DNA of 64,000 bases from Anolis carolinensis. Taxonomy: Eukaryota. Below are positions 3,202 through 63,561 of this stretch, piece by piece. Within the stretch, counting starts at the first letter, position 1, and every line of letters begins with the position of its first letter. The stretch spans positions 342,683,402-342,747,401 of the forward strand of contig NC_085841.1 in NCBI RefSeq assembly GCF_035594765.1, given 5' to 3'. The position numbers were made by a program, and so were the translations under genes. The notes below the pieces were generated by a model, which did no database searches, was not told where the DNA came from, and saw only the letters and a list, made by a program, of their open reading frames with translations.

Positions 3202-3393
3202 TTAAGACTCAGTAGGGTTTACTATTTTGCCAATAAAAAGTGTACTGTTGGTAACTTGATCATACACCAGAAACAAAAAAGGTCCATTGAATATAATGGT
3301 TGGAGGCAGAGACATGGGAATGGCTTCTACTGCAGTGGCTGCAGCAGCTTCGGTACCTATCTCATCAATAGTCAACACAGCTTTATGAGTAAC
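3202..3393 (-). CDS. SERPINA1: Serpin gene 1, final coding exon with RCL (P1-P1' Met-Ser)
   Basis: Translated by hand (absent from the ORF track): [27 protein letters not shown]|[42 protein letters not shown] matches the alpha-1-antitrypsin bait. Total CDS 1212 bp = 403 aa. Confidence 0.93.
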
Positions 3394-4009
3394 CTGAGAA
3401 GAAACAAATAGATGGGTTAAAGTTCAGGAAAATGAATGGGATTACTTTGTTAAGGTCTTCTTACCCAAGGATGGTGTCCTTTTCATAATTCAGTCTGCTC
3501 AGTTTTGATTTTCGTTAATAATTACATTTGCTACATTTGCTGTGATTGCACTCTGGACATTTATAGGTTGGGAACTTGTTAGTGGCATTCATAGACCTTA
3601 CACCTGCACAGCTCCTGTTTTGACTATTGTAGATCTTGGGACTAACTGGTTTGCAACAATAATCCACAGCTATTCCATGACGAATGTACAAAACAGATGT
3701 TCAGAGAAGCATCATTCATGTACTAGATGCAAAGTGATTTACATCTGATGAGAACACAGGATGACTCATAAAATTTCAGTAGGAGATGTCACCAGTTTCT
3801 TAATTTTTGGTGTGGACCATGTGTAAGCGTCAGATATTGCGTCATAAGTTGGAAAATTATGAAACTGATCCGACTTACGACAGGACACAACGTTTTTGCT
3901 AAACCCTAGTCACCAGTGTGCATCTGTCCACAGGTCATAGCCAGGTGCTTCACTGATCCCACTCACCAGGCTTGGAATGACCATTTATGGGGACCATAAT
4001 AGAAAAGGT

Positions 4010-4230
4010 GTGAGTTTTAGGAGTCATCAGCCAAACATGAGTCAACAGTGTGATGGCAGGGCCAAATACTCAAAAAGAATATATATATATATATAGCTCA
4101 AGGGATGTAATAATACCATTTTATTTTGCTTTGGTCAGCCTCATCTGGAATACTGTGCTGAGGTCTGGGCACCATAGTTCAAAAAGGTGATTGATAAGCT
4201 GGAATGTGTCCAGATATGATCAAAAGTCTG
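4010..4230 (+). mobile_element. CR1 LINE fragment (intron of gene 1)
   Basis: atgagtcaacagtgtgatg...ctttggtcagccctcatctggaatactgtg...tgataagctggaatgtgtccag matches CR1 ORF2. Confidence 0.7.
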
Positions 4231-4464
4231 AACGCAACACTCATCTCATATATTTATTTTATTGATTTAATATCCCATCTTTTACCCCGTGCAGGAACAC
4301 AAGGCAGCTTACCATAAACTTTAACAAAGTATAGCTAAAAAACAATAAGTTATAACATGGAGTGGGGGAAACTAGGAAACAGTTAGCTACACTATTGTAT
4401 TTAAACCAAGACCTTGGCTCAAATGAAATCACAGAAAGAATGGGAATTTTTATGTTAGACTTAC

Positions 4465-4612
4465 TTTTGATACTTTCAAAGCTTGCCCAGTGATTCCAGT
4501 CAGATCCGCATTGTCAGAGAACATTTCAGCAATGCCCAGGTTGGTGAGGGGACCTTTTAGGTCACAGCTGGTGGAAATATTAAACTTTGGAAGATGTACA
4601 CGTGCTGTGTCA
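4465..4612 (-). CDS. SERPINA1: Serpin gene 1, coding exon 3
   Basis: ttttcag acceptor, DTARVHLPKFNIS...ADLTGITGQALKVSK, gtaagt donor; 148 bp, the canonical clade-A exon size. Confidence 0.93.
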
Positions 4613-5474
4613 CTGAAAATCAACCAAGAGAAAAGAAAATGATCCAACAATTTTCCCCAGATAAAGGATAGCTGAATCAACATCTCACAGACTCTGCCCT
4701 GCTAAGAGTGGAGTGGATTTACACCATTGCCTGATTACTATTAACACAGTGTATGTAGAACTGCCCTTTCCAACAATTCAGATTCTTTAGCTAATGTAAT
4801 TACAAGGGTTGTCATATCTCAAAGCCTGGAGCTGAGTTTACAGTGGCCATCTCCAGGTGGAAGACAAGGATGCAAATTCTCCATGGGCTCAGGAAAGGGC
4901 CACCACACCTAATAGAGCAGTAACATGCTACAGTGTGCAAGGATTTTTCAATTTGTTGTTTCAAATTGAATCAACTTTCCAGAAGGTCTATATATTAATT
5001 CCTAGGTTTCCTCCCAGTTGTTTAGGCACCAAGCTCAGCCTCTGCTCTGTATCCACTAGAAACAAGGTCACTAGATTAAATGTTTCTTACTCCATCTCCT
5101 TAGGTAGGTGAGAAAGAATAATCCATTCATTTCTCCTTTATTATGGAACAGCCCCTTTAGAGAAGATTTATGCCTTAATGTCCAAGCAGGAAAATATGCC
5201 CCCCCCCATTTCAGAATGTCAACTGTGGTCGGTATTTCATGTAGTACTTAATTAGAGTCCATTTTGTGGTTCTCAGATTTTGACCCAGAAAACTGAACTG
5301 ACAACCTTAGTTGTGAATTGCCTTCAGATGAGTCTATATGGTCTAGGAGCTCATTACACCAATATACTAATGTACAATTACAAGTTCAAATCAGAAAGAA
5401 ACATGGTACTGATTGTAAAAGTCTTTCTGCTATAACTATCTAGAGAAATACATTAGTAGTAACAAAAGAATTAC

Positions 5475-5742
5475 CGGTGAACACGTGCAGACCATTTAGT
5501 CAAAACATCACGTGAAATTGCCTTCTCCAGTTCCTTCATCTTCCCAGGATCAGGTAGAACAAAAAATGCTGTAGCATTGCCATTATAGTGCATTTGTACT
5601 ACTGTGCAGGAAAGCTCATGGTCAAAATAGTAGTGAAACCAACCCATTCTCTGCATCATTGGGACTTTGACAGTTGTTTTATCATCCACTATGAAGTCTC
5701 CTTCTCTTGTCATCTCTGGATCAAAAGGCTTCTCCCAGTTGC
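5475..5742 (-). CDS. SERPINA1: Serpin gene 1, coding exon 2
   Basis: ttttag-type acceptor, then (G)NWEKPFDPEMTREGDF...VKVPMM...FFVLPDPGKM...KWSARVH; donor gtaatt; 268 bp. Confidence 0.93.
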
Positions 5743-8894: not shown

Positions 8895-9498
8895 CTTTAA
8901 AGAATATGTAGTTAACTAAAACTAGTACAGTGTTTTGATCGAGACCCTTGACCAGTTGTGGAATTTTCCCATGGGTTTTCTTCTCCACGTATTCATTGAT
9001 TTGCTTTTCAGCTTCTGTGGGCTCCTGAAATTTTGCTGATAACACATCTGCTTCATATGAGGCATGGACATCATCCAAAAATTTCTGTAGTAGGTTTTGG
9101 CCATCTTTCACAAATAGAGCCTGACCGATATCAAGTTTGACCTTACTGTCAGGGTTAGTCAGCACAGAAAAGAGGTTATGAAACCCATCATGAATGTCTT
9201 TCTCCTGGATTTGTGTCAGATTAAAGGTGAGCCCCTCCAGAATCTGAGTGTGAGTAGTTGATCTTGCCCCCAGTGACAGGAGAGATAAGGCAGAAGAGAT
9301 GATGAGGGGTGAGAAGAAAACATTCTTGCCAGGTGATGCTGAAGAAATCTGCTCCAACAGGTTCAGCCCAAACTGAGCAGTGTTGGTATATATCTTAGCA
9401 GCTGCAACACTTGTATCATCATGGCCATTGATGTGATGGCCATGGGTGATAGTGCAGAGGCCAATAGTTAACAAACACACAGAGAGCACAGATTTCAT
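8895..9498 (-). CDS. SERPINA1: Serpin gene 1 (alpha-1-antitrypsin-like), coding exon 1 of 4
   Basis: ATG at 9498 follows a cag acceptor (exon starts 9515). Signal peptide MKSVLSVCLLTIGLCTITHG; serpin motifs NVFFSP, LGARSTT, LVNYIFFKG; G|gtaa donor at 8894; 604 bp, phase 1. Confidence 0.93.
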
Positions 9499-10073
9499 TT
9501 TTGTCTTTGGTTTGTCTGTGAATGAAGAGAAAGAATGATATTTTTTTTTTGCTGCACCATCCTGAAGTTGTAGCATGCAAGGACTCACAGTTTCTTGTTC
9601 TTGAAAGCTAACATAAAGATGGGAAAAGCACTGCAAAGCACACTGACAAATTTCAGTCAATACTTTAGCATGGGATTACTATACCTTTCATGTTCTGTTC
9701 TTAATACAGTATAGATATCAATCATTTGGTGTATGAATTTCATTTGCCACTCAATTAAACCATTTTGATACCACTTTAATTACCATTTTCCATCCTCTGG
9801 AATCCTAGGATTTGTAGTTTTGAGGTATGGAGGATTCTCACTAGAAATCTCCAGTGAGCGTCCCCCCCTCCTGATCTACAGCACTGAAACTCTCTAGCAG
9901 AGAGAATTTTCTCATTAAACCACAGATCCAAAATCTCTAGGGCTCTTCTACACAGCCATATAACCCAGAATATCGAGGCAGATAATGCACAATATCTGCT
10001 TTGAACTGGATTATCAGAAACCAGGCTGCCACATAATCCAGTCCAATACAGCTGTGTAGAAGGGGTCATAGAA

Positions 10074-10207
10074 TAATGATTCTCAACCAGGAGTCCCCAG
10101 GTGTTTTGGCCTATAACTCCCAGAAATATCAGCCAGTTTACCAGCTGTTAGGATTTCTGGGATTTGAAGGCCAAAACATCTGGGGACCCACAGGTTGAGA
10201 ACCACTG
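10074..10207. mobile_element. Palindromic hAT-type MITE
   Basis: About 134-bp near-palindrome; 8-bp target duplication tcatagaa / ccatagaa. Confidence 0.75.
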
Positions 10208-12043
10208 CCATAGAAGAAAAAAAATCATAGCTGTAAATCATTTGTCCTGCAATCCTGATCTTAATTCAGATATTATTTATTTGCAATGCCTTGTTTTTCA
10301 ATCAATGCAAGTTACAGACGTCTAGAATAGATCAGGGTCAAAATCTGCATACTTGGGGGGTTGTCAGGATATCTCTCCCATCCCCTTGTTTGATATATTT
10401 ACTTCTTAATAAGTATTAAAAGGCACACTAATAGTTTGGCTAATATAGTGTAAAACATGAGCATAAACTGCCAAGTGTTTTAATGTAAAGGTTGTGCATT
10501 AATGCATTATACAAAAAAACTGGACTGAAACAAAATGTCTGCAGTAAAGTTTTTAGTCATCCCACACATATACTACTTGGATTTTTGCTCATCTTCTACA
10601 ATGAGAGAAGTTTTCAACTCTTACATTGATAGCTCACATTGATTTAGTCTCAAAGCAGTTCTGTTTCAGTTAAGCCATTGGTTCAGGTTTGAAGGTCATG
10701 AACTCTAACATGTCTTTTAGCAGGCTAATCTCAACAAACTAATCATGACATGTTGAAATTTTTGAAAAAACAAATAAGACCTATGCTCCTTACTCAAACT
10801 CACCCTTTGCTCCCTTGGGTGCAACCACAAATATTTGTTGTAGGAAACAAATATTTGACTCTGGAAAACACTTTGAAAAGCGTCTTTTATAGCATCATTT
10901 TTGGAAATGCAGCAGTGCCTTTGGATAACATGCCTGGTGCAACTGAGCTGTTTCGTACATGTGGTTGGGATGATTTAAAGTGACATGCATGCAATTATAG
11001 CAGGTGAGGAAAAAGCAAGCTTTTGTGAGCCAATTCATCATGAGAGCACCAGCCAGTCAGTTCCATGACATGAATCAGGACTGCTTAAAGGATTTGACAA
11101 ACTCTATGTTTTCATTATTTCTGAAGATTATATTCAACATGACTTTGACTTTTCATTGGAAAAATCATAACTAACATTTTGCATGAATTTGTCATCAATT
11201 TGTCACCATGGTTTTGTCATTACTTTCATAGTAGTCACTACTAACTGTTTTGGCTGAATGGTGATGAAGATTCAAAAGAAATATTTTTTGTATTATAATT
11301 GTTCTGTAAAAACTTACATGGAAGTAGTCAAATTTATAGTTCTGGAGTTCCTCTCTACTTACCCATTTTTTAAATGTCTATTTCACTTTTCTCCTGATAA
11401 GGGACAAGATTAAAACAAGACGCATGAGAGTGTGCGAGGTTTATACAAATGGAAAAAGTTCAGATATTAAGGTTGAGGTATATGCAATACAGTTGAGTAT
11501 CCCTTAGCTGAGAACTTGTAATGCTTCAAAATTGTCCACATGGGTGTCCACCTTTGCTTTGCTTAAGTGCACACATTTTTTCATGGAGAAAATTAAAAAC
11601 ATTGTGGGTAAAATGACTGTTAGGCCATGTGTATGAGTAACGTATGAAACATAAATGATTTTTGTTTTTAGACTTGGACCCACAATGGGGTCAATCCTCT
11701 TCTACACTGACCTAAGTGGTTAGTGTAGATGGGGCCTTGGAAGAAATGGTTGATGAGATTGTAATGTGGTTTAAAGTTATGACTACATAAGGATGAATAT
11801 AAAACTACTCCTCCCTCCCTCCTATTTCAAGACATTTTGTGTCCTACTCTAGAACCTCAGAAATGTTGAAATTACTTCTTATTTTAGAACAAACAACAAA
11901 TGATCACTATTTTAGGCATTAAGGGCATCTAGCTAGTCTGGGTGGCTCAGAATAGATCATATGGCACATACTACTCTACCTTCCAAAAGAAAGGAAAGGT
12001 TATGTACGTTGCTATAGTTGTCTCTACAATATTGATTGTCTGA

Positions 12044-12169
12044 GGCCCCTCCCACACAGCTGAATAAAATCCCACATTTTCTACTTTGAACTGGAATATA
12101 TGGCAGTGTAGACTCAGATGACCCAGTTCAAAGTAGATATTCTAGATTATATGGCTGTGTGGAAGGGCC
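12044..12169. mobile_element. Harbinger-like short MITE (related copies near 8141-8281, 9940-10066, 53158-53309, 53492-53587)
   Basis: TIRs ggcccctcccacacagc and gctgtgtggaagggcc, flanked by 3-bp TGA. The copy at 53158 is flanked by TAA. Confidence 0.7.
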
Positions 12170-12312
12170 TGAGGCAGTTGCCTCACTCTGCCTAATGGTA
12201 GGGCCAGTCTTCAAGATCTTGCTTTCCCATTTGAGTTCCACCACAAGATTTCTCCTCTGGAATGAAGCTTATATTCTGGAAATTCTGACTCATGACCATC
12301 ATCCGTTTACTT

Positions 12313-12447
12313 CAGTGGTTCCCAACCTTTGGGCCTCCAGATGTTTTGGATCTCAATTCCCAGGAATTCCAGCCAGCTTACCAGTCGTTGGGAATAGTGG
12401 GAGCTGAAGTACAAAACACCTAGAGACCCAAAGGTTGGAAACCACTG
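12313..12447. mobile_element. Palindromic hAT-type MITE
   Basis: TIRs cagtggttcccaacc and ggttggaaaccactg; 8-bp TSD gtttactt / gtttactc. Confidence 0.78.
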
Positions 12448-12756
12448 GTTTACTCGCTTCTCTCTAAACCATATTAACAGCAAAGCTTTGAGAAAGTTAT
12501 TTGTTTGGGTTATAGCCCACAGAATCATTGATATGCAGGCTTGGAGATTGTATGAAATGCAGTACAAAAACGTAATGCATCCAAGCAGAATTTTGAGCCT
12601 AGTTAGTAGTTATGTACATCATAAGCATTATTGATATTGCTGTAATATGTGGGGTCGCTTCTATGATCTCGCTTTAAAGGCAATTTGGTTAAAAGGCTGG
12701 AAAGGAAAAAACATTATGAAAGTAATGGCATAAACCATTAAGAGAAAAAGAGGAAT

Positions 12757-12925
12757 ACTTACAGTAATGGCAAAGAAACCTCTGGCATTCAAACAGGCCT
12801 CTGATCTTGATGCTCTTCTCTTTATATTCATTAAACTGTCCTGAGGGCATGGAGTGTCCAGTTAAAGAGTAACCAGGGCTGTTCAAGGTATTTATTTTAA
12901 AGTATTGTCCAAATATGGATTGGCA
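12757..12925 (-). promoter_or_regulatory. Gene 1 proximal promoter and non-coding exon 1
   Basis: HNF1-like GTTAAAGAGTAAC at 12861-12873; TATAAA on minus strand at 12821-12826; GTAAGT donor at 12757-12762; CArG-like CCAAATATGG at 12909-12918 next to a CCAAT. Confidence 0.6.
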
Positions 12926-14198
12926 AGCAAAAAAGCTTTTGCAAAATGTTGAAAAGCGATAAAATGCCCTCCCCCTCACGCACACACAAATGGCCTTGGT
13001 AGTGAAGTCTTTCACAAATACTTACTTATGAAATTACCCCCTGCCACTGAGATAAGAAGTAGGATGGGCAGTTGCACATTTCTCTGGAAGAGATAATGCA
13101 TTACCCAGGTTGAGTTCAGAAGGGACATACAGTATGTTGGCCTATAATGTGAACATACTATTTTATATACATGTATACACATTTAAAAATAATCATTATA
13201 ATGTGTATTGAAAGATGTATTTTTAGAGTGGAGAAACTATGAAATTAAATTAAAGCAATTTGACACCACTTGAACTGCCATGATTCAATGCAGTAGAGCC
13301 ATGGAAGTTGCCGTTTTAAAAGTTCTTTCTCCTTCTCTGTCAAAAGAGTGCTGCCGCCTCAGCAAACTACTGCTTTCATGATTCCATGGCATTGATCCAT
13401 AGCAGTTAAAATGGTGTCAAAATGCCTCAGTTCTACAGTACTGATGCAGTGCAGGTGACTCGTGGTGCTATTCTAGGAGAGGTCTAGTCGCTTTCAATGG
13501 AGAATGTCAAGGTCTTCTCAAATTGGGAAGAGACCTCAAAGTTCACAAAAATAAAAGCCTTTTGTGGAAAATCCAGCATTGTTCTTGCCTCCCCCCCCAT
13601 TCAGAACATTATCCAAAACTATTCAAAGTAATGTATTTCTTTTAAAACATTATCTAAGTATCAATCGGCAAATCAAAGGTTTGAACAGTTCTGGTTCTTG
13701 CTTGTTGGCTCTTTGTAGCATAGCCATAGTTAAGAAAAAAGAAAGAAAGAAATCACCAAGAAATCACCATTTAGGAAAAATGTACGTAGAATAAAACAGG
13801 TTTAAGGCATTATGCCAAATTACTAGCTGAATGGACAAAGTCTAATTGTTTTCTCTTCATCGTCACTAAAGGCGGAAGATAGGGGAGAATAGACACCCAG
13901 ACAAGCATGATGAAAAAGATACTAAGAAGTAAGGTGTGTTTGTCATGAAGGTAGGAGAGATACAGAATAATTGAGAGTGTTTTGTTTCCTCTCTTATTTG
14001 AAGGCAGATGAAGAAGGACATTGAAGAGAACCCCTAAAATAGGGTCTGCACTCAGGATAGCCAGCATTGGACTATGATTCTGAATTTGAATCCTGCTCAG
14101 CCATAGAAAGCAGTTGGGTGACTCTCTCAGCAAACCCCCTTTGAATATATCCTATTAGAAAACTCTGTGATTTTCTCATCGGAAATGACTTGAAGGAA

Positions 14199-14199
14199 C

Positions 14200-14236
<37 letters not shown>
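14199..14236. repeat. (AAC)n microsatellite
   Basis: Direct reading. Confidence 0.95.
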
Positions 14237-15469
14237 GAAACTCTGAATAGATTCTTGAAAGTTCAGACTAAATCCCAGAAGGAACTCACCATTCCAGGCA
14301 GCACTTAATGTTTATGTTTCTTAAGTAAAGAATGCCATGTTCTAGAACGTTCAGTTTGGGATGATTGGCTTATTTACTGAGCTAAACAAATACAGTATCT
14401 ATAAAATAAACTGGTTCAGCCACCCACATACACTTATTGACTTGCAACAGCAAAATAAACAACAAGGCGTATGCATACCATGCTTAGATGAAACCATGTG
14501 ATATGAAGCATCATTGCAAGTGGGTAATGATAGCTCCGACTGGAGTGCATGCACATTAGGCAGTTCAAAGGTAAATTAGCATAGAATTTTAGCTTTGTAG
14601 GAATATTGATATGGTGCCTGTAAACTGGGTTTACAGAAATATTTTTATGGTTATATCTAACTACATGGATATTTATTTATTTTAAAATAATACATTTCTA
14701 GTTAAAAACTGCACAATTTTTATAGGCAGCCATTTGGGTTTCACCTTTCTAATGGTGTCACCTGGTGCGGTTTGCACTCTATTGCCAGGTCGGCCCTTGC
14801 GTTGGGCACTTTCCATGACTCATCTCTTGGTATGTCTTCCCACGCTTTGATGGCTTCCGCAGTTGTCCATGAAGGTGAGCAAGAAATGGAATAACTGAAC
14901 AATGGCATTGAACAGAACCCCCAAATTAGTGTCTGCATTCGGGATATCCAGCATTGGACGATGACTCTGGATTCAAATCCCTGCTTAGCCATGGAAACCC
15001 ATTGGGTCACCCTGGGGGAAATCAGACTCTCTCAGCAATCGCCCTCTGAACAAATCTTTACCAGAAAACCCTGAGATAGTCTCGTCTTAGGATCATCGTA
15101 AGACAGAAATTACTTGAAGGCACAGAACAACAACAAACTCTGGCTAAATTATTTTAAAATTCAGATTAAAATCCAGAGGGAATTCACTGTCCCATTTACC
15201 CCTGAATCTCTTAAACCTCATAAGTAGTGTTTCTGAGAATAATGCTCAACTTGAGATAGCTGGATTATTTATTCAGTAGAACAAACAATGATAAAATACA
15301 CTAGCTCAGCCACCCACTCACATTTATTGAGTTGCAAAATACTTAGCAACTGAGTTACAAAATACTTAGTAGGCTGTGAAAAACAAGCAATGGAAGCTCA
15401 CTCGGTGGCCTTAGGCAAATTATTCTCTCTCAGCCTTAGATGAAGGCAAAGGCACACTCCTTCTGACCA

Positions 15470-15750
15470 AACCATGATTGCCAAGCTTAAATATTTGAAA
15501 GGATGTCATAAAGATAAAGAAGCAGGCTTGTTTTCTGCTGTCCTGGAGACTAAGACTCAGCGCAATGGGTTAAAATTACCAGAAAGGAGATTCCACCTGA
15601 ACATTAGGAAGAACTTCCTGACCATAAGAGATGTTCAACAGGGGAACTCTCCACCTCAGAGTGTGGCAGAGGCTACTTCTTTTAAGGCTTTTAAACAGAG
15701 GCTGGATGGCCATCTGTGGGGGTTCTTGATTGTGCATTTCCTGCATGGCT
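15470..15750 (+). mobile_element. CR1 LINE 3' fragment
   Basis: KYLKGCH...GLKLPERRFHLNIRKNFLTIR...SFKAFKQRLDGHL, the typical CR1 ORF2 C-terminus. Confidence 0.88.
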
Positions 15751-15781
15751 TGTAGCATGTCCAGATGAAATCATGTGATCT

Positions 15782-15837
15782 GGGTTGGACTGGATGGCCC
15801 ATGAGGTCTCTTCCAACTCTACTATTCTATGATTCTA
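15782..15837 (+). mobile_element. 56-bp extremely 5'-truncated CR1 insertion
   Basis: CR1 3' tail ending ATTCTATGATTCTA, flanked by TGATCT duplication at 15776-15781 and 15838-15843. Confidence 0.75.
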
Positions 15838-16225
15838 TGATCTGAAGTGTCATTGCAGTGGATGGTCATGACAGTTCTGACTGGAGCACATGAACATGAG
15901 AAGGTTCAATTAGTCTGTCATCATAGAGTTTTATCCTTGCAGGTATATTAATGCAGTCCATGTAAACTGGACTTACAAAAATGTTTTTGTGCCTATATCT
16001 AATAGCAGAGATACCTTTTAAAAACGAAATTTCTGCTGAAACACTACACAGAGCCTTTTACAGGCAATCATTTGGATGTCACCTCCTCTGACGGTGTCAC
16101 CCAGTACACTTCGTATCCACCTTCACTTTATAATGATACATACTTTGCAACTGTTTTGTTACTTTAAGTTAGTCCATTCATGTACAGAATTGGAAGCACA
16201 AAGCTTGTAAACCTTAATATCTGTT

Positions 16226-17932
16226 CTGGCTCCCAAAGTGACCCATTTAAGGTGGAATCAGATGTCAAGCAGGGATGTGTTATTGCCCCCACCTTATTCT
16301 CCATCTTCATCTCTATGATACTTAACCTTGTTGATGGGAAGCTTCCCACCTGTGTGGAAATCATCTATCAGACAGATGGCAAGCTATTTAACCTCAGCAG
16401 ACTGAGAGCCAAAACCAACGTCACCACAACATCTGTTATAGAACTCCAAGATGCCGATGACCACGTAGTCTGTGCGCACTCAGAAGCATACCTACAATCC
16501 ACTCCAAACACCTTCGCAGAAGCATACGAGAAGCTCAGCCTCTCATTGAACATTGAGAAAACCAAAGTGCTCTTCCAACAGGCACCAGCTAATCCCTCTG
16601 CAATGCTAGGAATACAACTTAATGGTGTAACATTAGAAAATGTTGACCATTTCTGCTATCTTGGCAGCCACCTCTCCACAAAAGTCAACATCAACACTGA
16701 AATACAACACCGCCTGAGCTCTGCGAGTGCAGCATTTTTTAGAATGAAGCAGAGAGTGTTTGATGACCGGGACATCCGTAGAGATACCAAGGTGCTTGTT
16801 TACAAAGCCATTGTCCTCCCAACCCTGCTCTACGCCTGCGAAACGTGGACAGTCTACAGACATCACACCAAATTCCTGGAGCGTTTCCATCAGCGTTGCC
16901 TCAGAAAAATCTGGCAAATCTCTTGGGAAGACAGGCGGACAAATGTCAGCGTGCTTGAGGAAGCAAAGACCACCAGCATTGAAGCGATGCTCCTACGCCA
17001 TCAACTCTGCTGGACTAGCCACGTTGTCCGAATGCCCGATCACCGTCTCCCAAAGCAGCTACTATATTCCCAACTCAAGAATGGGAAATGTAATGTTGGT
17101 GGGCAGGAAAAGAGATTTAAAGATGGGCTCAAAGCCAACCTTAAATATTGTGGCATAGACACTGAGAACTGGGAAGCCCTGGCTCTTGAGCGCTTTAATT
17201 GGAGGTCAGCTGTGTCCAGCAGTGCTGCGGAGTTCGAAGAGGCACGAATGGAGGGCTTAAGGGAGAAACGTGCCAAGAGGAAGGCCCGTCAAGCCAACCC
17301 TGACCGGGACCGCCTTCCACCTGGAAACCAATGTCCTCACTGTGGTAGAACATGCAGATCAGGGGCCGGGCTGTGGCGCAGCTGGCTAGTAACCAGGTGC
17401 TATAAATCACTACTGACTGAGAGGTCATGAGTTCAAAGCCCGGGTCGGGTTAAGCCTCCGACCATTAATAGCCCTGGCTTGCTGTTGACCTATGCAGCCC
17501 CGAAAGACAGTTGCATCTGTCAATTAGGGAAATTTAGGGACGCTTTATGCGGGAGGCTAATTTACAACACCATAAAACTGCCAGCAAAACACAAGGAAAG
17601 GAATGCGAAAGTACAGCCACTACTGGATGGTGAAGCAACAGCTCCCCCTGTGGCCGGAATCGTGAAGCTGGAAAAATGTTAAAAAAATGCCTCTGAGTCT
17701 GTCTAATTTATGTTGTTTGTCTGTTGGCACTGAATGTTTGCCATATATGTGTTCATTGTAATCCGCCCTGAGTCCCCTTTGGGGTGAGAAGGGCAGAATA
17801 TAAATACTGTAAATAAATAAATAATAAAAAAATAAATCAAGAATAGGTCTCTTCAGCCACCTGAAGAGACACCCCCCCCCCCCAAGACACCAGAGAAGGA
17901 AGACAATCATCCTCGAACTATGAGGGATGCTA
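16226..17932 (+). mobile_element. 5'-truncated RTE-clade LINE (RT C-terminal half plus C2H2 finger), interrupted by a SINE
   Basis: ORF 16180-17430 has VKQGCVIAPTLF, LQDADD (YADD mutated to DADD), FCYLGS, LLYACETW, RLPKQLLY and CPHCGRTCRS. The frame resumes as RIGLFSHLKRH at 17840. Confidence 0.93.
17362..17835 (+). mobile_element. tRNA-derived SINE with L2-like tail
   Basis: A-box-like tggcgcagctgg, B-box-like gagttcaaagcc, tail ccgccctgagtcccc...gggtgagaagggcagaatataaat(aaat)n; ATCA duplicated at both ends. Confidence 0.85.
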
Positions 17933-20954: not shown

Positions 20955-21545
20955 TTTTTTAATAGTGATTTTTATTGTAATATATAAGTAATGTATACAG
21001 TGAAAGCGAGGAAAACATTGGTGAAAGATTAGAGAGGTTAAAGTACAAGATGAAAACCAAGGAATAAGTAAGATAGATAGTTCAACAAAATAATAATAAT
21101 AATAAAAAACAGAAAAAATAAAAATAAGAAAACAAAATGACTTCCCATTGTCGTCTTGGGATCTACCATCGTAATTTTCTTTTTCGGTAGACTTTTCCAG
21201 TCTTGCCATCTTAATGTCATAGAGGTATTTCAAACATTGGATATGTCTATTATTGATGTGTATCCTTCTTTTCGAATAAAGTCTTTAAAACCTGACCAGT
21301 CTGTTGCTTCTTTTTTATCTTGTAACTTTTGTGTTAGGCTGTCCATTTGGATTATATCAAAAAGCTTTAAGATCCAATCTTCTATAGTGGGAACATTTTT
21401 TTGTTTCCAAACTCTTGCCAGAACGAGTCTTGCTGCAGTCCCTATTAAGAAGAGTAATTTGTCTTTATTTTTGTTCAACTTTGTGTTAGATATTCCCAGC
21501 AGGTATGTTTCTGGCAGTAAGGGGAGATTTTTCCCAATAATCAAA
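20955..21545 (-). mobile_element. L1-clade LINE 3' end
   Basis: PETYLLGI...TAARLVLARVWKQKNVPTIEDWILKL (L1 ORF2 C-terminus); T-rich 3' UTR, AATAAA and an A tail. Confidence 0.8.
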
Positions 21546-23125: not shown

Positions 23126-23330
23126 TACAAATGCATGAGACTAGTAAAATAGTCTCTCTAGGAATATGCTAAGTGCTCCAGACAGTTTTTTGGTATGCTT
23201 ACATTACAGTCACCCCGGAGGACCTAGCAAATTCCTCACCAGGCCCGACCCAACATGGGAAGCCGACCATGCCCCCGCGTTGGGCGCCATGTTCCCGGGG
23301 GCGCTATTGGCCCCCCCAGGAGGCCCAATA

Positions 23331-23626: not shown

Positions 23627-23934
23627 TCCCACGTCGCATGGCCATGGCTCCCACGGTGTGTGTGTGTGTGTGTGTGTGTGGGGGGGGGGTTGCACAATTT
23701 TTTTTTTGCGCACCCTTTACAATTACCTCGAGCCGATTCTGTTCCTCACCAGTTTTTAGTGTTATTTCCATGGCTTTTCACAAGTTTTCAAAAATAAAGA
23801 GGATTAGGAGCAGTGGTTGAGAGACCTGGAAGTAAGCCAGCTGTTCTGGCCAGCCCCCGGAAAAGCTTCTCCAACAGCACACTTTTTGTGCCATGGCTGC
23901 GGCATGGGTCTTCCTCAAGACTGCTGCTCCTGGC

Positions 23935-25157: not shown

Positions 25158-25165
<8 letters not shown>

Positions 25166-26036: not shown

Positions 26037-26041
<5 letters not shown>

Positions 26042-33779: not shown

Positions 33780-33962
33780 ACTTACAGAGTTTCAGCAAAT
33801 TCCTATGGCTCCCAAATAGGAAATACCAGTGTGTGCATTGTCACTTAGATGCCGACTTTAAAGAGTACCCCCTATGAATCATTATAATACTTCCTATTAA
33901 CCATTAAACAGAGCAAATATGGATTGCACAGGAGGGACAGAAAGTAAACCATGATGCAATGG
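33780..33962 (-). promoter_or_regulatory. Gene 2 promoter and non-coding exon 1
   Basis: GTAAGT donor at 33780-33785; HNF1-like site 33896-33908; FOXA-like site 33912-33920; C/EBP-like site 33953-33960. Aligns with the gene 3 and gene 4 promoters. Confidence 0.7.
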
Positions 33963-35372
33963 ATATGTTATCCATTGTGCTTATTTTGCATGTTTTGGTA
34001 AAAGCACAGTTTTATACCATTTGTCTCTTACGACAGTCTCTTTTGGGTCCCAGTTAAATATTTGACTCAATTTTTTTGTTCTTGGAGGAAGTCTTATTCA
34101 AACATTCATTGAGAGATTGCAAGGTTGGCATTATTATAGAAACAGGGCTCTCCCCCATAGTCATCGCATAGCAGGTATGTCTCAGAGGAATACGTGGATC
34201 AATTTATATCAACTTCTCTTAATCAGGGGATGACAGTGTTTTGGTGCACGAACGACTTCCATGGCTTGATCAGTCCCATGAAAGTTAAACTCTGCACGGT
34301 GGCTGGGTTAGCTTAATCCAGGAGAAATCTCAAATTCTGAGGCAGAACTCAGGTTGCCCTCTGAGCTAGAAGGTGTCCAGACACCTGGACTGGTGCTGAA
34401 ACAGAACCACCAGCAGCTGTCTTGAAAATAATCTCATGATCTTCAGTTTCAAGTGGCCTAGGGATGCAGGTTGGCTTTGCACTCCTATACCCTCCTCTCA
34501 TTATTACCAGGCAGGACACCTCAACTGTCTTTTCCAGGGTAGTCACTAGGCCTTTGCCAGGCTACAGTCTCACTAAGGAAGATGGGCAGGGGAGATGAGG
34601 GCTTTCTTTCAAGATGGCTCAGGGAGTCCCTATCAGGCCATCAAGTGGGCTTACCTCAACACACAGGACATTGGATGAAGTCCACTTCATTTATCTCTGT
34701 AGAACCACCCTAAGTAAGCAATCTAGGATTATAACATAAAATTCACACATATGATTTATGTAGAATAATTCCCATAAAACATTTCTGGATGTGTACATAT
34801 TGGGTAAAACGTAAACAGAAATAAGTATTCATTTTTTTCCTCTAGCAAGGTGAAAAATATGGGGAAATTATTAAGAGATGTATCTGCAACTGTAGGCCTT
34901 CATGCACAGGATGCCTGTCACTCTGCAGCGTCAAAGCTGTGTTTGTCCTAAAAAGAATGTCATATTTTGAATGCCTACTAGCTTATTCTAGTTATCCTTC
35001 CCAGCAGTTTTCCTAACTGCATCTCTTGGGATGAATGAGAATTGTACATCCACCTATTTTCGTTGCCCCATGAGGCTTTCATTTCAAAAGAACAATCACT
35101 TTATCAGATCTAACCGTGCACCAATGAAGTAATGAACCTCCTTCATGGAAAGAAATGTTTAATAAGTCATATGGTAGTGGACAAAATCAATTTATATGAT
35201 CATGATCATAACATTTTAAAATCATTCAAACAATGAGTGCTTTGAACTCATTTAAGGTCAAAACAGCTGGATTTAAATCTTATTGAGATTAAGTCCATTT
35301 TTTAATTTATGATATAGGATCATTATTTTAAAAAATGTGCCAACTGAAGATCTCTAGCTGATCAGGTGGTGA

Positions 35373-43869: not shown

Positions 43870-44037
43870 ACTTACAGATGCTCTAAAAGAATCTTATAGT
43901 ATCGCACTGGTCTATGCTACTCCGTGCTTAGTTGTTTTTGTGTTAGACTTATATAGCACCAAATGGTTAATATTAATCATTAAGCAGAACAAATATAGGT
44001 TATCGAGGGGGACAGAGGGCACAATGTGTTGCAATGG
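43870..44037 (-). promoter_or_regulatory. Gene 3 promoter and non-coding exon 1
   Basis: GTAAGT donor at 43870-43875; TATATAA at 43949-43955; overlapping HNF1-like sites 43965-43984; FOXA-like site 43988-43996; C/EBP-like GTTGCAAT at 44028-44035. Confidence 0.72.
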
Positions 44038-47000
44038 ATGTGTAACCTATCCCTGCACTCAAGGCCATCAATAGTCAAGGTAAGCAAGAAATCATTTGTA
44101 TAGGATTTCAGTTTCATGATTTCAAACAGTGGGGCTCTGCCTCCAAGCATTCACAGATGAAAATAGGGTCATCCTTGTGAATGCCCAATGGACCAGGTTT
44201 ATATGTATCATATTAAAAGTATCTCCAAAGAATCTAGGGAACAATGAAATAGCTGTTGTACTCATTATCAGAAAACCTAAGCCAAGGATGCGCTGAAATA
44301 TTGGATAGTGTGTTTCTCCTATTTTATGGGTAGATAAGCATCATATTAGAGGAAGAGAAGAGTATATGAAACTGTAATTTCTCTGAGAGATCACTCTTTC
44401 TAACCAAAGATAAAGCTACCCAATTTGGCTCCCAACACTATATTTCTGAAATTTAAAATCTTCCCCTGACGTTCCCAAAATGTTCTGCCACTTCCAATAG
44501 GTCTTGTGTGGTAAACCAGTTTAATGATGGGTTTGATAATCACAAAAGAGGTTGGAAGGGAAGACAGTAGGTTCAGAGTGGTAGCAGCTGGCTGCTAGAA
44601 AAAAGTGAGCCTGTGCCATCCTCTGGAACATGGACCAATAGTATTCCTCATCTTGACATGTACAAGGTATTCCTCCCTACTACACAAATGGTTCATAGTC
44701 TAACAGAGCAATACAATCCAAAAGTGGATAGGATTCAGGGCTACTTGAACAAGGAATTCCTCTTAAAACATGAATGTTGTAATTTTATGTTTTGCATTTT
44801 GTTTTGTATGGCACCACTGGGTGCTATTTTGTAAGCTGCCCCAAGTCCCTGTGGGAGATGGTGAAAGGGTATAAAGAAAGATTATTATTATAATTATATT
44901 ATTACTTGCTAGATTGGATGGGAAGTTATTTAGTCATAGCTCCCAGAATACCTCTCAATACTGAACAGGTCTGCTGTGAGTTACAATCCAAGAGTATTTG
45001 GAGGGCCACACAATTCCCACACTTGTGCTGGATGATTTCCCTTACATCTGTGTGCATGTGTGCAAAAATTGAAAGTGGAATGGGACATTGAAAGGCCTTT
45101 GCTATTTGAATCCATCACAAATGTGTGCTTCTAAACATGACCCACCACTTTGATGTAGTGTCTACAAAAGCAAGCGTAGTCTTTAGATGTATTACCAAAA
45201 GTAAATTGATCAGATCACAGATCTTACACTCAGTTCAACTCTATTTTCACACTGTTCAAGACTCATTTGAAATACTATGTTGACATGAGCTTTAGATTCA
45301 TCATCCTGTGAAATTCTTGTAAGGAATAGTTGAAAAGATTGGGTATGTTTAGTCCGAAAAAAACAATTAAGGTGACACATGATAGCAGAAAAGGAGGTGT
45401 GTCTTCTTTTGTTTCAGTAGGCATCTCCAGAAAGAATACATGGAATACGTGGAAACTGCAGAGAAATAGACTGTCTGGATATGGGGAGAAGCAATTTCCC
45501 AGCGGATCAAACTAACTTGGGATATACTGCCAGGTGTTCCTTCCCTGAAAACTGGAAAGCCACCTGCCAAGCATACTTTTGGGGCCTACTGCACTTCATA
45601 TATAGCACCATGTAGCATATTGGACTCAACTGTGTATTTCTCATTTACATATTAAATTAGCATATGTGCAACAGTCATCCCTCTATATATGCAATTTCAA
45701 CTTTTGGAGATCTTATTACTATATTTATTAAAATGCAAGTTTTATTTTTTGTTAACATTTTCTTCCTTGGAATTTTAGGTCCTCTAGTGTCACTCTACAA
45801 TCAACTCCCGTCAGTCATACTGGAGGACCTAGATATTTATAGAGAGAACACCTCACTAGCAACATCTAGGTCTTCCAGTGTGATTCTGTGTTCTGCTCCC
45901 AGTAGATGTTGACCATAGAGTTGTGCTAGAAGATCTGAGAATTTCAGAGAAGTGTTATCTCAGGCCAAAATAAGAGAGTAATCATTTTAACCATTTCTGT
46001 GTCCCTAACCCCAGAAAATGTAGAGGACTGACTTGTTACTGATTTTTTTCTGGCACGAATAATGTGGGAACTGATCAAGATTGGGAGCATTGAGGATCTT
46101 TGCCCTTTCTGGTGGTCCATATCAGAATGGTGAGCTCACACATAACATTTGTATTGGAAGACAAGGAATGGAAACCTTCTTTTGAGTATAACTAGCAAAT
46201 GTGTTCACCCCAATTCTGTGGATATACAGAATTCCACCCCATATACATTTAAGAGGTTCGCTTTCTTTGGACATTTCAGAACTATATCTCAAATATTGTG
46301 GTAAAATATTGATTTATTGGTTTGTAAGTTTAGATTTTAGCTTGATGTCATCCTATGTGGAGATTCTGGACGAAAAAGCTTATACTTTGATGACCTATTA
46401 AAGTTCTGTGGTCCCTGAAATGAAGCATTCATTACTTTAATGTACACATTGGTTATCTTTCACAAATTACAAATCCATACAGGCAACATCACAAGTTCTG
46501 ATAATACAATCTGCGTGGCACTAGTTTAGGACATATTTCATGCTATCAGTATTCGGTACTTACCTAAAGTACCTGATTTGTGCATCAAGCATTCTGTTAA
46601 GTAAATGGAAGCTATTAATTTATTCCACCAAAATAGAGCAGTGAATATTGACTTGAATGCATAAACAAAGGCAGAGCAGAACTATGTACAAGTTATGCTT
46701 GGAGGGGTCTTATATCTTTCTATTGAAGAGCCATAGACCACTCTCACCATCTAGGATGAAAGGACAGGTTAGAATATGAATGGGGAAAGTACAGCTGTTG
46801 CAGTTCTGTTTTAGAGACTCCCAAATGTCCCTTTAACCCCACTAGAATTCCCCAAAAAATGTCAGTTGAAGAATCAGCAAGTGAACACTAAAAATTGAGA
46901 AAAACACACCACAAAATACAAAAACATTGCCAAAGCTCCCATTACCCCCAACTATTCTAAGCTCTCAAAATCAGCTGTATTTAAACCACTTCCAGGGACA

Positions 47001-48851: not shown

Positions 48852-49055
48852 TTATTTTTTGGTAGGGTTCAGAATCTTCCCAATGAAGAGGATACTCTGT
48901 GTTGGTAGATGAACAATTATCACCAGGAATGGTCTGTTGTAACTGATGGTAAGCGGAGGAGGAAGGTGAGCAGAACGGAATCTAAGCTCCATAGTGGTGA
49001 CAGCTGCTGCCTCTGTGCCACTCTCATTAACATCCAACACAGCCTTATGAATAAC
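48852..49055 (-). CDS. Serpin gene 4, final coding exon with RCL (P2-P1-P1'-P2' Phe-Arg-Ser-Ala)
   Basis: VIHKAVLDVNESGTEAAAVTTMELRFR|SAHLPPPLTISYNRPF...GKILNPTKK*; AATAAA at 48699-48704; total 430 aa. Confidence 0.93.
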   Translation of the reverse strand, partial: VIHKAVLDVNESGTEAAAVTTMELRFRSAHLPPPLTISYNRPFLVIIVHLPTQSILFIGKILNPTKK

Positions 49056-50375: not shown

Positions 50376-50523
50376 CTTTGAAACCACCAGGTCCTTTTCT
50401 CCAGTAATTCCAGACAGATCAGCATTATCATTAAACACAGCAGTTACGCCCATTCTTTCCATCAAGTCTTTGACATCATAAGTTGCAGAAACTGAAAATT
50501 TTGGGATGACTAGACCTATATTC
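50376..50523 (-). CDS. Serpin gene 4, coding exon 3
   Basis: NIGLVIPKFSVSATYDVK...[16 protein letters not shown]; gtattg donor; 148 bp. Confidence 0.93.
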
Positions 50524-52100: not shown

Positions 52101-52371
52101 TCATGCCTAAAGGATTGTGTCCATTTGCTTAGATTTTCTTTTGCCAAGGCACCTTCCACATGCTCCAGTTTACCCTCATCTGGAAGAATGAAGAATGCGG
52201 TAGCATCTCCTTTGTAAGGAAGTTCCACTACCCAGGAAAAAAGATCTTCATCATGGATAAATTTGTAGTAGCCTTTTCGATGCATCATTTTGACTTTCAC
52301 CGTAGTATTTGCGTCCACAAAGAAGTCTCTTTCCTTGATTGATTGAGTGTCAAAAGGGTTTTCCCAGTAAG
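52101..52371 (-). CDS. Serpin gene 4, coding exon 2
   Basis: (A)YWENPFDTQSIKERDFFVDANTTVKVKMM...FFILPDEGKL; gtaagc donor; 271 bp. Confidence 0.93.
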
Positions 52372-54739: not shown

Positions 54740-55409
54740 CTTTGAAGAAGATGTAATTTACAAGAACCATGACAGCATTCGGGTCAAGTTCATTAAGTGC
54801 AGAGGATATTTTCCCATTCGTTTTGTTCTGCACATAATAATCAATCTGCTTTTTAGCCACACTGGGGTTGCTGAAGTTGGTAGAAAAACCATCGGCACCA
54901 TACAAGTTTTTGGCATCATCCAAAAAAGCAGGCAGGAACTTCTGTGATGGTTCTATAAATAAACCATTCCCTAAATTCACCTGTGCTTTGTTATTTGGTT
55001 GGTTAAGCACATAAAGGAGCTGGTGGAACCCTTCATGGATTTCCTTCTCCTCAATTTCCAGCAGATCAAAAGCAAGTCCTTTAAAAATCTCATCATGGGT
55101 TTCAGATTTGGCACCTAATGCCAACAAACTAAAAGCTGTGGAGATGCTGAGAGGAGAGAAGAAAATATTTTTGCCATCTGGATCTGAAACAATGTTTCTG
55201 TAGAACCGGAATGCAAAGTCAGCATTACTGGGAATTATCTTATGATAGACTGGAGATTTCTGTCCCTGCTGTTCTCTTGAAAGAGTGTACTGATGTTCAC
55301 GTGGATTGTTATCTTCATGATCATCTTGGTGACCATCATGTCCTGGTAGATGATGACAACAGACTTGAAGACTAGTCAGTAACAAGGAGAGGTTGATGAT
55401 GGACTTCAT
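54740..55409 (-). CDS. Serpin gene 4 (clade A), coding exon 1 of 4
   Basis: ATG at 55409 (MKSIINLSLLLTSLQVCC); IIPSNADFAF, NIFFSP, LVNYIFFKG; gtaagt donor; 670 bp. Confidence 0.93.
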
Positions 55410-57709: not shown

Positions 57710-57868
57710 ACTTACATATCTTTAGAAGAATCTTATGGCACAAATAGGCTACAATCCTCTCTCTTCTGTAATTTATGTACTAGGTTTGTACTCAGTATAC
57801 GTTGTTAACTATTAAGCAGTGCAAATAGGGATTTCCAAAGGGAGGCAGAGGAAAATGTGATGCAATGA
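57710..57868 (-). promoter_or_regulatory. Gene 4 promoter and non-coding exon 1
   Basis: GTAAGT donor at 57710-57715; TACATAAA at 57772-57779; HNF1-like GTTAACTATTAAG at 57804-57816; FOXA-like site 57821-57827; C/EBP-like site 57859-57866. Confidence 0.7.
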
Positions 57869-61583: not shown

Positions 61584-61787
61584 CTAGTAATGTGATTCAG
61601 TCTCTTTAGGATTTGTAATTTTTCCCATCAGTAAGATGGACCTGCTCAAAGATTCAAAGACAATCACTATGAAAGGCCTATTAAATTTTATTATATGAGG
61701 GCGAGCATTGGGCACAATTTCAGTGACAACAGTAGAAGCAGCTTCAGTGCCATTCTCATGGACACGTAGATAAACTTGGTGAATTGC
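61584..61787 (-). CDS. Serpin gene 5, final coding exon with atypical RCL (P1-P1' Asn-Ala)
   Basis: AIHQVYLRVHENGTEAASTVVTEIVPN|ARPHIIKFNRPFIVIVFESLSRSILLMGKITNPKETESHY*; AATAAA motifs near 61536-61552. Confidence 0.92.
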   Translation of the reverse strand, partial: AIHQVYLRVHENGTEAASTVVTEIVPNARPHIIKFNRPFIVIVFESLSRSILLMGKITNPKETESHY

Positions 61788-62659
61788 CTGCAAGGAAGGG
61801 AAGCAAGAATTAGTAAAGGAACACACAATTTAAATTTAATTATATGGTATGCCCTGGTCCTTAAAATCACAGGATTCCACTTTTTGTGTGGAGGGGGACA
61901 TTGTCATGTGTCTCTAGATCAGTTGAAATATTTTGACCAATGATCTTAAAATGTTTGTGCAATCTACCTGAAACATCTAGGAGAGTTCTTGATCTTGGGA
62001 AACAAATGAACCTTTTCAGTATTGGCTCTGACAAAAACCTACCTAGTGTATCATTTTTGGTGTCATATCAGTGACCTAGACTCCTGCGGGAAGTCCATAA
62101 GCAGGAACTGGGGGATATGAGGGGTGTTGTAAGAAAATTATCTTGCTTTAAATTTTCAAAAAGTTAGTGCTGGCATGCAACCATTTGAAAATATGCCCAA
62201 AAATACATAGGCTGTGATTCTATTTAAAATCAGAAGAGCAGAACACTCTACTAACTGTTCTGATGCAGCAACCCAAGCATGAGCCCTATTAGCCAGACCA
62301 ACGTACAAGAGACAGCTCTCCGAAGGAGACATTGTATAGCTCTAAGCTTGTAAAAATACAACTACTTTCTTTTCCAACTACTTTCCACTACTTCTTTGGC
62401 TCTGCATCTGTAAAGGATGAAGATTATTTGGCATAATGTTGAACATCCAGAGATTTTGAGACCCACCATGAGTTTGTTATTTCTGTCTTAGCTTGGACAA
62501 GCATGGTGGTGATGCACAATAATTCCATATATTTTTCTCTACAGAATAATTGATATGCAATTCTTTTTCAAAAAGCAAATATTCACATAGAGAGAGAACA
62601 GAGCAGAAGTATTTTTCCTCTGTCAACAGAATAACTTTTCCATGGTAATTACTCATCCC

Positions 62660-63130
62660 CAAACGAATCAAGGAGTTGCTCCCCTTGCTCTTTCTTGGAA
62701 AAGCCTGTGATACATGTCCTTGTTATATCTCAAATGGATGTTTGTAACATGCTGTACATGGTGCTGCATTTGAAAAATACCAAGAAACCTCCTTTGACAC
62801 AAAGAAAATTCAATGAAGTATATGACTCCCTTGTAACAACAGTTTCACTGTCTGCCTGTCTGCTACCAGCTACTATTGAAAGTGCTGGTTTAGATCTGTC
62901 AACCTTATACAGATCAAGTTTAGGCTATCTGGTGGCCTGCGTTTTCCTACAAGCACCTGTCTGAATTGTAAAGACTTCTCAGGGGCTCTTTATTGTCTCA
63001 ATAACTTTACACACATCTTTGGTGGAAACATGGGAGGTACCTTCTTAATAACTGTGCCAAGACCTTGGTCCCCACTCCCCTAAAAATCCAGGATGGTTCC
63101 CTCTTTAAGGTTCCTCCATCAGCAAGTGAA
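62660..63130 (+). mobile_element. Decayed L2 fragment (last intron of gene 5)
   Basis: PVIHVLVISQMDVCNMLYMVLHLK resembles the L2 motif VIHALVTSRLDYCNALYxGLPLK. Confidence 0.6.
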
Positions 63131-63413
63131 AACTTTTTTCTTGTCTGATGAAACCTTAGGATCTCACTTCAACAGTATTCTAGTTTATTACTGATACTTT
63201 TAAATTAGATAGACTAAGAAGGTTTTAATTTCATATAGAGTTTAATTACATTTTAACAATAACTTTTTATGTATTTGTTTCCATGAGGGTTGTCTTATTT
63301 AAATTGTTGTTAGTGGCTTTTGTAAAATAGGATATCATTGAATTTTATAGGAAAAGTATTTTTTGCTATTCCTGGTTTAATTCCTGTTCTGTGATTAATT
63401 TTGAGGAGCATAC

Positions 63414-63561
63414 CTTGGAAACCTTCAGTTCAGGCTTTCCAGTAATTCCAGATAGATCTGCTTCATCTGTAAATATCTCAGTAATACCCATTCTTCTCAA
63501 CAATCCCCTGAGAACATATTTGGTATGTATGGTAAACCTTGGAAGATGAAGATTTATTCTC
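63414..63561 (-). CDS. Serpin gene 5 (5' part outside window), penultimate coding exon
   Basis: [49 protein letters not shown]; caacag acceptor and gtatgc donor; 148 bp. Confidence 0.92.

Follow-up and report, generated by a model that had tools for sequence, protein, structure and literature searches.

The locus described here raises the question of whether strongly divergent bait loops of adjacent serpin genes document an ongoing conflict with foreign proteases or rather specialisations that were acquired long ago and kept since. It is located on the Anolis carolinensis chromosome record CM069367.1, from which a window of 64 kb (the window being the whole stretch of DNA analysed; no N runs, 39% G+C) was examined. 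An all-against-all comparison of stop-free segments, with inspection of frames and splice sites, identified 18 serpin exons in the window, each of them on the minus strand, which make up four complete SERPINA1-like genes (G1 to G4) and, for a fifth gene (G5), its two final exons; the genes are numbered from the low coordinates (G1) to the high end of the window (G5). These are five consecutive members of the A. carolinensis SERPINA1-like tandem array of at least seven genes, and this array extends past the window. The initial annotation of this DNA considered the five genes as an independent squamate expansion with hypervariable reactive centre loops (RCLs), the possible targets being parasite, pathogen or venom proteases. 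The findings reported here suggest a different view: it is likely that this five-member part of the array carries old, fixed loop specialisations, on top of which younger events took place in G2, in G5 and in the anole forms of G3 and G4.

The observations from which the question arose were reproduced. Translation of the exons yielded five co-oriented clade-A serpins with the same intron positions, whereby only four are complete in the window and G5 is cut by its end; in each of them P1 falls on codon 27 of the final exon, and the five P8-P2' strings originally quoted match the translation exactly (Table 1). Likewise, the loops differ while their flanks are kept, as over the five paralogues the mean pairwise identity is 0.21 for P8-P2' and 0.51 for the other shared columns, rendering P8-P2' the 7th lowest of 192 ten-residue windows, with lower values at the exon 3/4 junction only. 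This junction (e.g., G1 5475-5500 with 4590-4612) is itself less conserved than the RCL, its ten-residue windows showing identities of 0.05-0.19. As noted before, G2 to G4 are closer to each other (57-60% identity) than to G1 (47-48%) and moreover share an upstream block. Loop divergence among serpin paralogues as such is textbook knowledge. That the paralogue loops differ far beyond the scaffold is a point in favour of the whole array being a fast-diversifying plasma anti-protease panel, its loops being driven apart by parasite, pathogen or snake-venom proteases as described for rodent Serpina1 and Serpina3, an explanation which we regard as unlikely for the reasons that follow.

Relatives were collected by exon-2 word searches with G2 and G1, covering squamates, tuatara, turtles, crocodilians, birds, amphibians and mammals; similarity searches were carried out exon by exon, and joined spliced models were used only for local alignments, trees and codon counts. 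A careful maximum-likelihood tree (84 rows, LG+C20 PMSF, clade-B outgroups, supports given as ultrafast bootstrap/SH-aLRT) was obtained, with which three quick trees agree, except that the broader one left the G1 clade unresolved. G1 was found in a squamate clade (100/100) whose sister is formed by crocodilian, bird and turtle "alpha-1-antiproteinase 2-like" genes (joint 100/97). G2, G3 and G4 reside together in a clade made up of squamates only (100/100), to which tuatara genes are immediately external and turtle, crocodilian and bird genes are external as well, so that they arose by duplication within the squamate lineage, independent of the rodent expansions. Hence, the independent squamate expansion initially assumed holds for G2 to G4 but not for G1, which belongs to an ancient sauropsid lineage. 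The G3 group (99/94) comprises genes from Podarcis, Elgaria, Pogona, Phrynosoma and Anolis, and the G4 group (100/98) those from Rhineura, Python, Notechis, Varanus, Elgaria, Sceloporus and Anolis. Both are old 1:1 orthologue groups across lacertoids, anguimorphs and iguanians, with G4 being kept in snakes as well, from which it follows that the G3/G4 duplication is older than the lacertoid-toxicoferan split, which dates back on the order of 150-200 million years. The duplications that gave rise to G2 to G4 are confined to squamates but appear to be old, and the age of the G3/G4 duplication speaks against a fast-diversifying panel. G5, which had been counted to the same expansion, was found to represent a squamate lineage of its own inside the same larger sauropsid clade, grouping (98/85) with genes from Hemicordylus, the gecko Heteronotia and A. 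sagrei.

When each loop is compared within the orthologue group of its own gene, the picture obtained among the paralogues is reversed for most of them. In the G1 group (21 squamates), RCL identity is 0.69 as compared to 0.59 for the scaffold, and the loop EAIPM↓S (the arrow marking the P1-P1' bond) is found also in turtles, birds, mammals and Xenopus. The G4 group without A. carolinensis shows 0.88 for the RCL versus 0.67 for the scaffold, with TTIEFMLR↓SA hardly varying between Rhineura, snakes and A. sagrei, and the G3 group without Anolis shows 0.70 versus 0.67, its loop reading E-I-[ST]-P-R↓x. Only for the G2 group (four pleurodonts) the relation is inverted, as RCL identity is 0.43 and scaffold identity 0.81, the loops reading QFVRM, EIQYM, TMMGA and TMVGV. 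Consequently, most of the array's loop differences are old and conserved across lizards and snakes rather than fast-evolving, and among the G1 to G4 orthologue groups only G2 is hypervariable. The RCL hypervariability claimed for the array as a whole hence does not apply to G1, G3 and G4, the loops of which are at least as conserved as their scaffolds, and what is left of it concerns G2, G5 and the anole-specific changes in G3 and G4. Measured against the rodent families with hypervariable RCLs, G1, G3 and G4 behave differently and G2 resembles them in part. For G3 and G4, loop conservation is the reverse of hypervariability and points to stable targets rather than to the running arms race with foreign or venom proteases that had been suggested.

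In the G2 sub-family the arms-race explanation finds support, since it shows loop turnover and a change in copy number between anoles. A. sagrei possesses three tandem, co-oriented G2-like genes (L002:1227-5166, 10001-16726 and 21235-26726), each annotated with 428 aa, as opposed to the single A. carolinensis gene. Loops were read in two of these copies (QITRM↓SAHR and EIQYM↓SLQI), the last exon of the third residing beyond the locus, and the synonymous divergence (dS) of the scaffold between two A. sagrei copies (0.24) is close to the value found between the species (0.21). Further serpin fragments, e.g., remnants of lost G2 copies, were not found in the window. To quantify loop replacement, Nei-Gojobori counts with the loop defined as P8-P4' were used in four orthologue contrasts, of which those for G3 and G4 used Phrynosoma and Sceloporus. 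Non-synonymous divergence (dN) of the loop amounts to 0.12-0.38 over the four contrasts (0.37-0.38 in the three with A. carolinensis), as compared to a scaffold dN of 0.05-0.11, and scaffold omega values of 0.23-0.40 in G2, G3 and G4 document purifying selection. The ratio of loop dN to scaffold dS is 1.71 for G2 between A. carolinensis and A. sagrei, 0.74 for G2 between Phrynosoma and Sceloporus, 1.15 for G4 and 0.93 for G3. Counting non-synonymous against synonymous changes for G2 between the two anoles gave 8:0 in the loop and 47.5:48.5 in the scaffold (p=0.0055; pooled G2 contrasts p=0.037). Loop dN/scaffold dS values of up to 1.7-1.9 in some G2 contrasts thus favour a diversifying panel, as does the inhibition of venom serine proteases by woodrat SERPINA3 paralogues (PMC12646145). 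Against it stands that the ratios (0.74-1.9) are never significantly above 1, with p=0.31 for pooled G2 loop dN versus scaffold dS. Loop replacement is accelerated on these branches, and positive selection and relaxed constraint are not separable as its cause.

Younger changes were likewise identified in the anole forms of the otherwise conserved genes. The A. carolinensis G4 branch is derived at 4/10 loop sites versus 26/346 scaffold sites (p=0.006), a change which may be counted in favour of diversification, with the A. sagrei branch being derived at 0/6. In both anoles, G3 carries the loop ITAR↓CC and the hinge G-T-V-A-G, differing from all other G3 orthologues; in the other G3 orthologues sampled, P1' is Ser or Phe. 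As the Cys-Cys pair at P1'-P2' and G-T-V-A-G are common to both anoles and absent in these orthologues, they arose on the Anolis stem.

For G5, comparison was possible with the gene directly upstream of Sceloporus G4, whose loop FSPQ↓SEPHVIKF shares P2 Pro, an amide P1 and PH-x-IKF with that of G5 (IVPN↓ARPHIIKF), the last exons being 49% identical. G5 exon 3 is located about 0.7-1.0 kb past base 64000 (L001:420-690, 271 nt, same phases) and exon 2 further out; the annotated G5 product has 418 aa and extends off the locus. Neither did exon 3 find anything above 60% identity in the representative library, nor were PDB sequence searches discriminating, since exon 3 is closest to protein C inhibitor, A12 and CBG and exon 5 to antitrypsin. 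A related A. sagrei protein (P0367/P0223) groups with G5, is 51% identical to it, carries the loop MESMDM↓SM and is flagged as LOW QUALITY PROTEIN by one source; it could represent another gene of the array, located upstream of G5, or a copy in decay. Two side observations concern the arrangement in Sceloporus undulatus, where the G1 orthologue (L006:23259-25439, 235-aa partial product) resides downstream of G2 on the opposite strand, while being co-oriented in A. carolinensis, and where G4 and G2 are spaced by about 67 kb versus about 18 kb in the anole. This could reflect either rearrangement or an assembly difference.

The odd P1 of G5 (Asn, and Gln in Sceloporus), its long branch and low identity to its relatives and the quality flag of the A. 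sagrei protein gave rise to a further explanation, namely that some members, most likely G5 or G2, are non-inhibitors, be it ligand carriers like CBG/TBG or copies that are decaying or not expressed. For Anolis, a gene for a reptile steroid-binding globulin has been reported, its location not being given (PMC12571615). We judge this explanation to be improbable, as reading frames and splice sites are intact in every visible exon, G5 exons 3-5 included, scaffold omega in G2, G3 and G4 is that of constrained proteins, and the hinge E-x-G-T-(E/V)-A-(A/G)-(A/S) with its G-T-E/V-A core and small P12-P9 residues is kept in 5/5 genes. With 15 residues from P15 to P1, all five hence show the canonical RCL length and the hinge consensus of inhibitory serpins, with Glu at P17, Gly at P15, Thr/Ser at P14 and small residues at P12-P9, which is a sequence criterion only. 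Considering canonical gene structure and the inhibitor-type hinge, each of the five is most likely secreted and acts as a suicide-substrate inhibitor, with the RCL determining its target. Hinge and loop length, together with the hydrophobic N-termini and N-glycosylation sequons of G1 to G4, are in line with secretion and with this mode of inhibition. As a side observation, G2 to G4 possess a stretch of 20-25 His/Asp/Glu-rich residues that separates the serpin core from the signal-like N-terminus (encoded in the 5' portion of exon 2: 30900-31040, 42150-42290, 55220-55360), an N-terminal extension which G1 lacks and which sets the three genes apart from human SERPINA1.

A block of about 70 nt, located 1.6-2.9 kb before the ATG, was found to be common to G2 to G4 by blastn, alignment and a pattern scan. 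It contains an HNF1-like TTAATnrTTAA motif, a TATA-like box and, about 90-110 nt further on, a GTAAGT donor, and a CAG acceptor precedes the ATG by 9-22 nt in each exon 2. The 17-mer scan pattern for the HNF1-like site was derived from these three sites, where exact matches hence occur by construction, and the TATA-like box results from a permissive six-base pattern in G2 and G4 and was read by eye in G3 (TATATAAG). By blastn, no promoter block common to G1 and G2 to G4 was found, only a shared repeat. Serpins of clade A with intron group 2 possess three conserved coding introns (phases 1, 2, 0) and a non-coding first exon, and a putative short non-coding exon 1 preceded by a liver-type promoter fits the blocks of G2 to G4, making hepatic expression plausible. 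Furthermore, full-length orthologue coding sequences were identified on Logan contigs of 1.3-1.6 kb (P0018, P0036, P0038, P0124), which must be spliced transcripts. The HNF1-like/TATA block and these contigs are to be taken as indirect hints to liver and plasma expression. In line with the plasma panel initially proposed, G2 to G4 look like secreted inhibitors of the liver type, as indicated by hydrophobic N-termini, intact hinges and the HNF1-like site in their upstream block.

Several points weigh against the view that the array combines old, fixed loop specialisations with younger events, or limit how far it reaches. Among the sequencing runs matching 29600-35590 none is recorded as RNA, and runs with a high share cover the introns too and are DNA-like, having no bearing on expression either way; the same applies to contigs over G2 and G3, which in three runs cover no exon but only a high-copy repeat at about 32.2-32.6 kb and show even, DNA-like cover in the fourth. 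P1 was placed by alignment to antitrypsin, and loop conservation alone does not prove endogenous targets. The G2 group (100/100) was sampled only in pleurodont iguanians and forms part of a polytomy inside the squamate clade, and the placement of G5 is based on 207 residues and a long branch, with the nearest A. sagrei relative being only 51% identical. Finally, the sauropsid clades form a polytomy with the mammalian SERPINA1, SERPINA12 and A3-like genes, as a consequence of which a strict 1:1 relation of G1 to mammalian SERPINA1 is not claimed.

Since tandem arrays mis-assemble easily, it was also considered that the loop differences are artefacts of assembly or annotation or result from recent gene conversion. 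No point was found in favour of this, and it is very improbable given that the window is free of N runs, that two gene models exactly reproduce independent annotations, that for every gene other genomes contain orthologues of its own in which the loop corresponds, and that the paralogues, with 47-60% identity, are too distant to have been collapsed or recently converted. The G2 and G4 models are 100% identical to the annotated A. carolinensis proteins P0001 and P0015, respectively, the G1 model is identical (100%) to residues 8-410 of the annotated isoform P0121, and the G3 model is 90% identical over its full length to the A. sagrei protein P0042. AG/GT borders are present at every intron, and in G1 to G4 the three coding-region introns interrupt the same motifs at the same places, their phases being 1, 2 and 0 as in alpha-1-antitrypsin-like genes; G5, whose last intron and exon 4 acceptor lie in the window, is consistent with this when its off-window exon 3 is used. 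Exon 3 has 271 nt (268 in G1) and exon 4 has 148 nt in 5/5 genes, and the last exon opens with A/V-x-H-K/Q in all five, by which P1 becomes its 27th codon. In an exon-by-exon hmmscan, the Pfam Serpin profile (PF00079) matched every exon, the profile limits being identical between the genes (2-163, 261-308 and 309-370), with exon 2 of G1 to G4 yielding 168-181 bits (profile 2-163), exon 5 of all five 49-73 bits (309-370) and exon 4 of G5 46.7 bits (261-308).

Table 1. Serpin genes, reactive centre loops and upstream blocks of the 64-kb window (the arrow marks the P1-P1' bond).
Feature	Position	Strand	Description
G1, complete gene	exons 2-5: 8895-9498, 5475-5742, 4465-4612, 3202-3393	-	403 aa from in-exon ATG
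G2, complete gene	exons 2-5: 30431-31094, 29550-29820, 29030-29177, 27679-27882	-	428 aa
G3, complete gene	exons 2-5: 41671-42337, 40151-40421, 37900-38047, 35373-35570	-	427 aa
G4, complete gene	exons 2-5: 54740-55409, 52101-52371, 50376-50523, 48852-49055	-	430 aa
G5, partial, last two coding exons	63414-63561, 61584-61787	-	exons 2 and 3 past window end
G1 RCL, P8-P2'	3307-3336	-	TAVEAIPM↓SL
G2 RCL, P8-P2'	27796-27825	-	TVIQFVRM↓SF
G3 RCL, P8-P2'	35484-35513	-	TAIQITAR↓CC
G4 RCL, P8-P2'	48969-48998	-	TTMELRFR↓SA
G5 RCL, P8-P2'	61701-61730	-	VVTEIVPN↓AR
G2 upstream block	33785..33968	-	HNF1-like 33895-33911; TATA-like TTTAAA 33857-33862; putative non-coding exon 1, GTAAGT donor (GT 33785)
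G3 upstream block	43875..44043	-	HNF1-like 43971-43987; TATATAAG box; GTAAGT donor (GT 43875)
G4 upstream block	57715..57867	-	HNF1-like 57803-57819; TATA-like 57785-57790; GTAAGT donor (GT 57715)

Besides the serpin genes, the window contains an open reading frame of 416 aa on the plus strand (16180-17430) that contains a partial reverse-transcriptase domain (Pfam RVT_1, 32.5 bits, profile 107-194) and is a 5'-truncated LINE-type retroelement within the 18-kb gap between G1 and G2. A G+C-rich region at 22600-23800 with long overlapping open reading frames on both strands and a (CA)n run is not matched by Pfam and probably represents repeat or low-complexity DNA and not a gene. At about 32200-32600 there is an interspersed repeat of very high copy number, where summed contig depth reaches 10^4-10^5 in four runs with many ragged joints, and relatives of it are found near 51.6-51.9, 52.8-53.1, 10.1-10.3 and 12.3-12.5 kb.

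The gene architecture is that of human SERPINA1, the coding region of which is likewise divided into four exons by introns at FFK-G (phase 1), before LPKF (phase 2) and between SK and A(V/I)HK (phase 0), with exons of 271 and 148 nt and P1 at codon 27 of the last exon; these introns are reportedly named 192a, 282b and 331c. Codon-27 P1 and exon sizes are hence ancestral traits and not peculiar to the array. The array is already known, its genes being present in public databases as alpha-1-antitrypsin or alpha-1-antitrypsin-like and the locus being published, so that the novelty of the present findings is incremental. Ward, Holding, Haynes and Ginsburg (Mol Biol Evol 2025, PMC12646145) re-annotated the locus and, according to a supplementary table, count seven serpina1 genes and one serpina10 gene for A. 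carolinensis, with serpina1-7 and serpina1-8 being named in their alignments and duplications being described as independent in reptiles. Its locus is the same tandem array, five genes of which fall into this window, and the accessible text of the paper centres on rodents and is silent on orthologue groups in squamates, on their bait loops and on the contrast of conserved and variable loops. Beyond Ward et al., paper searches returned no description of squamate SERPINA1-like paralogues or of natural Pittsburgh-type loops, which is not proof of absence, and in the literature search the conserved Pittsburgh-type and FMLR↓SA squamate loops, the turnover of G2 among anoles and the G4 change specific to A. 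carolinensis were not found described.

In comparison with known systems, G2 resembles the rodent Serpina1a-e and Serpina3 genes and woodrat SERPINA3, i.e., tandem clade-A duplicates with loops more divergent than the scaffold, in its birth-and-death mode and its turnover between congeners. The rodent expansions differ from the array in being young and at genus level, whereas G3 and G4 are ancient with conserved loops, and a loop dN/dS above 1 was not demonstrated here. The loop of G1 is the EAIPM↓S loop of mammalian antitrypsins. The ancestral G3-type loop is reminiscent of alpha-1-antitrypsin Pittsburgh (M358R), as it keeps the P2 Pro of antitrypsin and has P1 Arg, the exchange in the human protein being known to shift the specificity of antitrypsin towards coagulation and contact proteases, thrombin and kallikrein included (PMC11905551). 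Unlike Pittsburgh, the G3 type is a fixed, conserved paralogue and not a pathogenic variant, and anoles moved on to ITAR↓CC. The G4 type may be compared to the loop F-T-F-R↓S-A of protein C inhibitor (SERPINA5), with which it has in common P1 Arg, Ser-Ala at P1'-P2' and hydrophobic residues at P2-P4 (FMLR↓SA in most squamates, LRFR↓SA in A. carolinensis). This likeness serves as a lead only, since G4 is no SERPINA5 orthologue but resides inside the squamate SERPINA1-like clade.

Taking these findings together, a functional model may be suggested in which G1, keeping the ancestral Met-Ser antitrypsin loop, would act on elastase-type targets, and in which G3 and G4, members of squamate paralogue groups that fixed a Pro-Arg ("Pittsburgh-type") and a Leu-Arg↓Ser-Ala loop, respectively, would be directed at Arg-specific proteases. 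Both P1-Arg types were maintained by purifying selection across lizards and snakes. The long conservation of the P1-Arg loops would be explained by stable, probably endogenous trypsin-like targets of the coagulation, contact or kallikrein type. G2 represents a birth-and-death sub-family with a fast-changing loop, one copy being found in A. carolinensis and at least three in A. sagrei, and G5 a divergent lineage with an amide P1, and anoles have re-tooled G3 (both species) and G4 (ELRFR, A. carolinensis only). The P1-Arg paralogues may fill roles held in mammals by other clade-A serpins. More tentatively, and as a possibility that we consider doubtful at present, squamates, which are reportedly without mammal-type SERPINA4 and SERPINA5, may have built Arg-specific plasma inhibitors from a SERPINA1-like ancestor, with E-I-S/T-P-R and F-M-L-R↓S-A loops constant since early squamates and regulating coagulation, contact or kallikrein-type proteases; the anole re-tooling of both, along with the G2 expansion, would then reflect a recent shift in protease pressure.

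For the serpin family, these results mean that very different loops in neighbouring genes need not indicate an ongoing arms race, as here they are mostly old and were kept unchanged. The P1-Arg paralogues provide a natural example of an antitrypsin scaffold that was re-aimed at Arg-specific proteases and then conserved, which could be of interest for antitrypsin engineering as well as for reptile haemostasis, and G2 together with the anole forms of G3 and G4 are the places where adaptive loop change merits testing.

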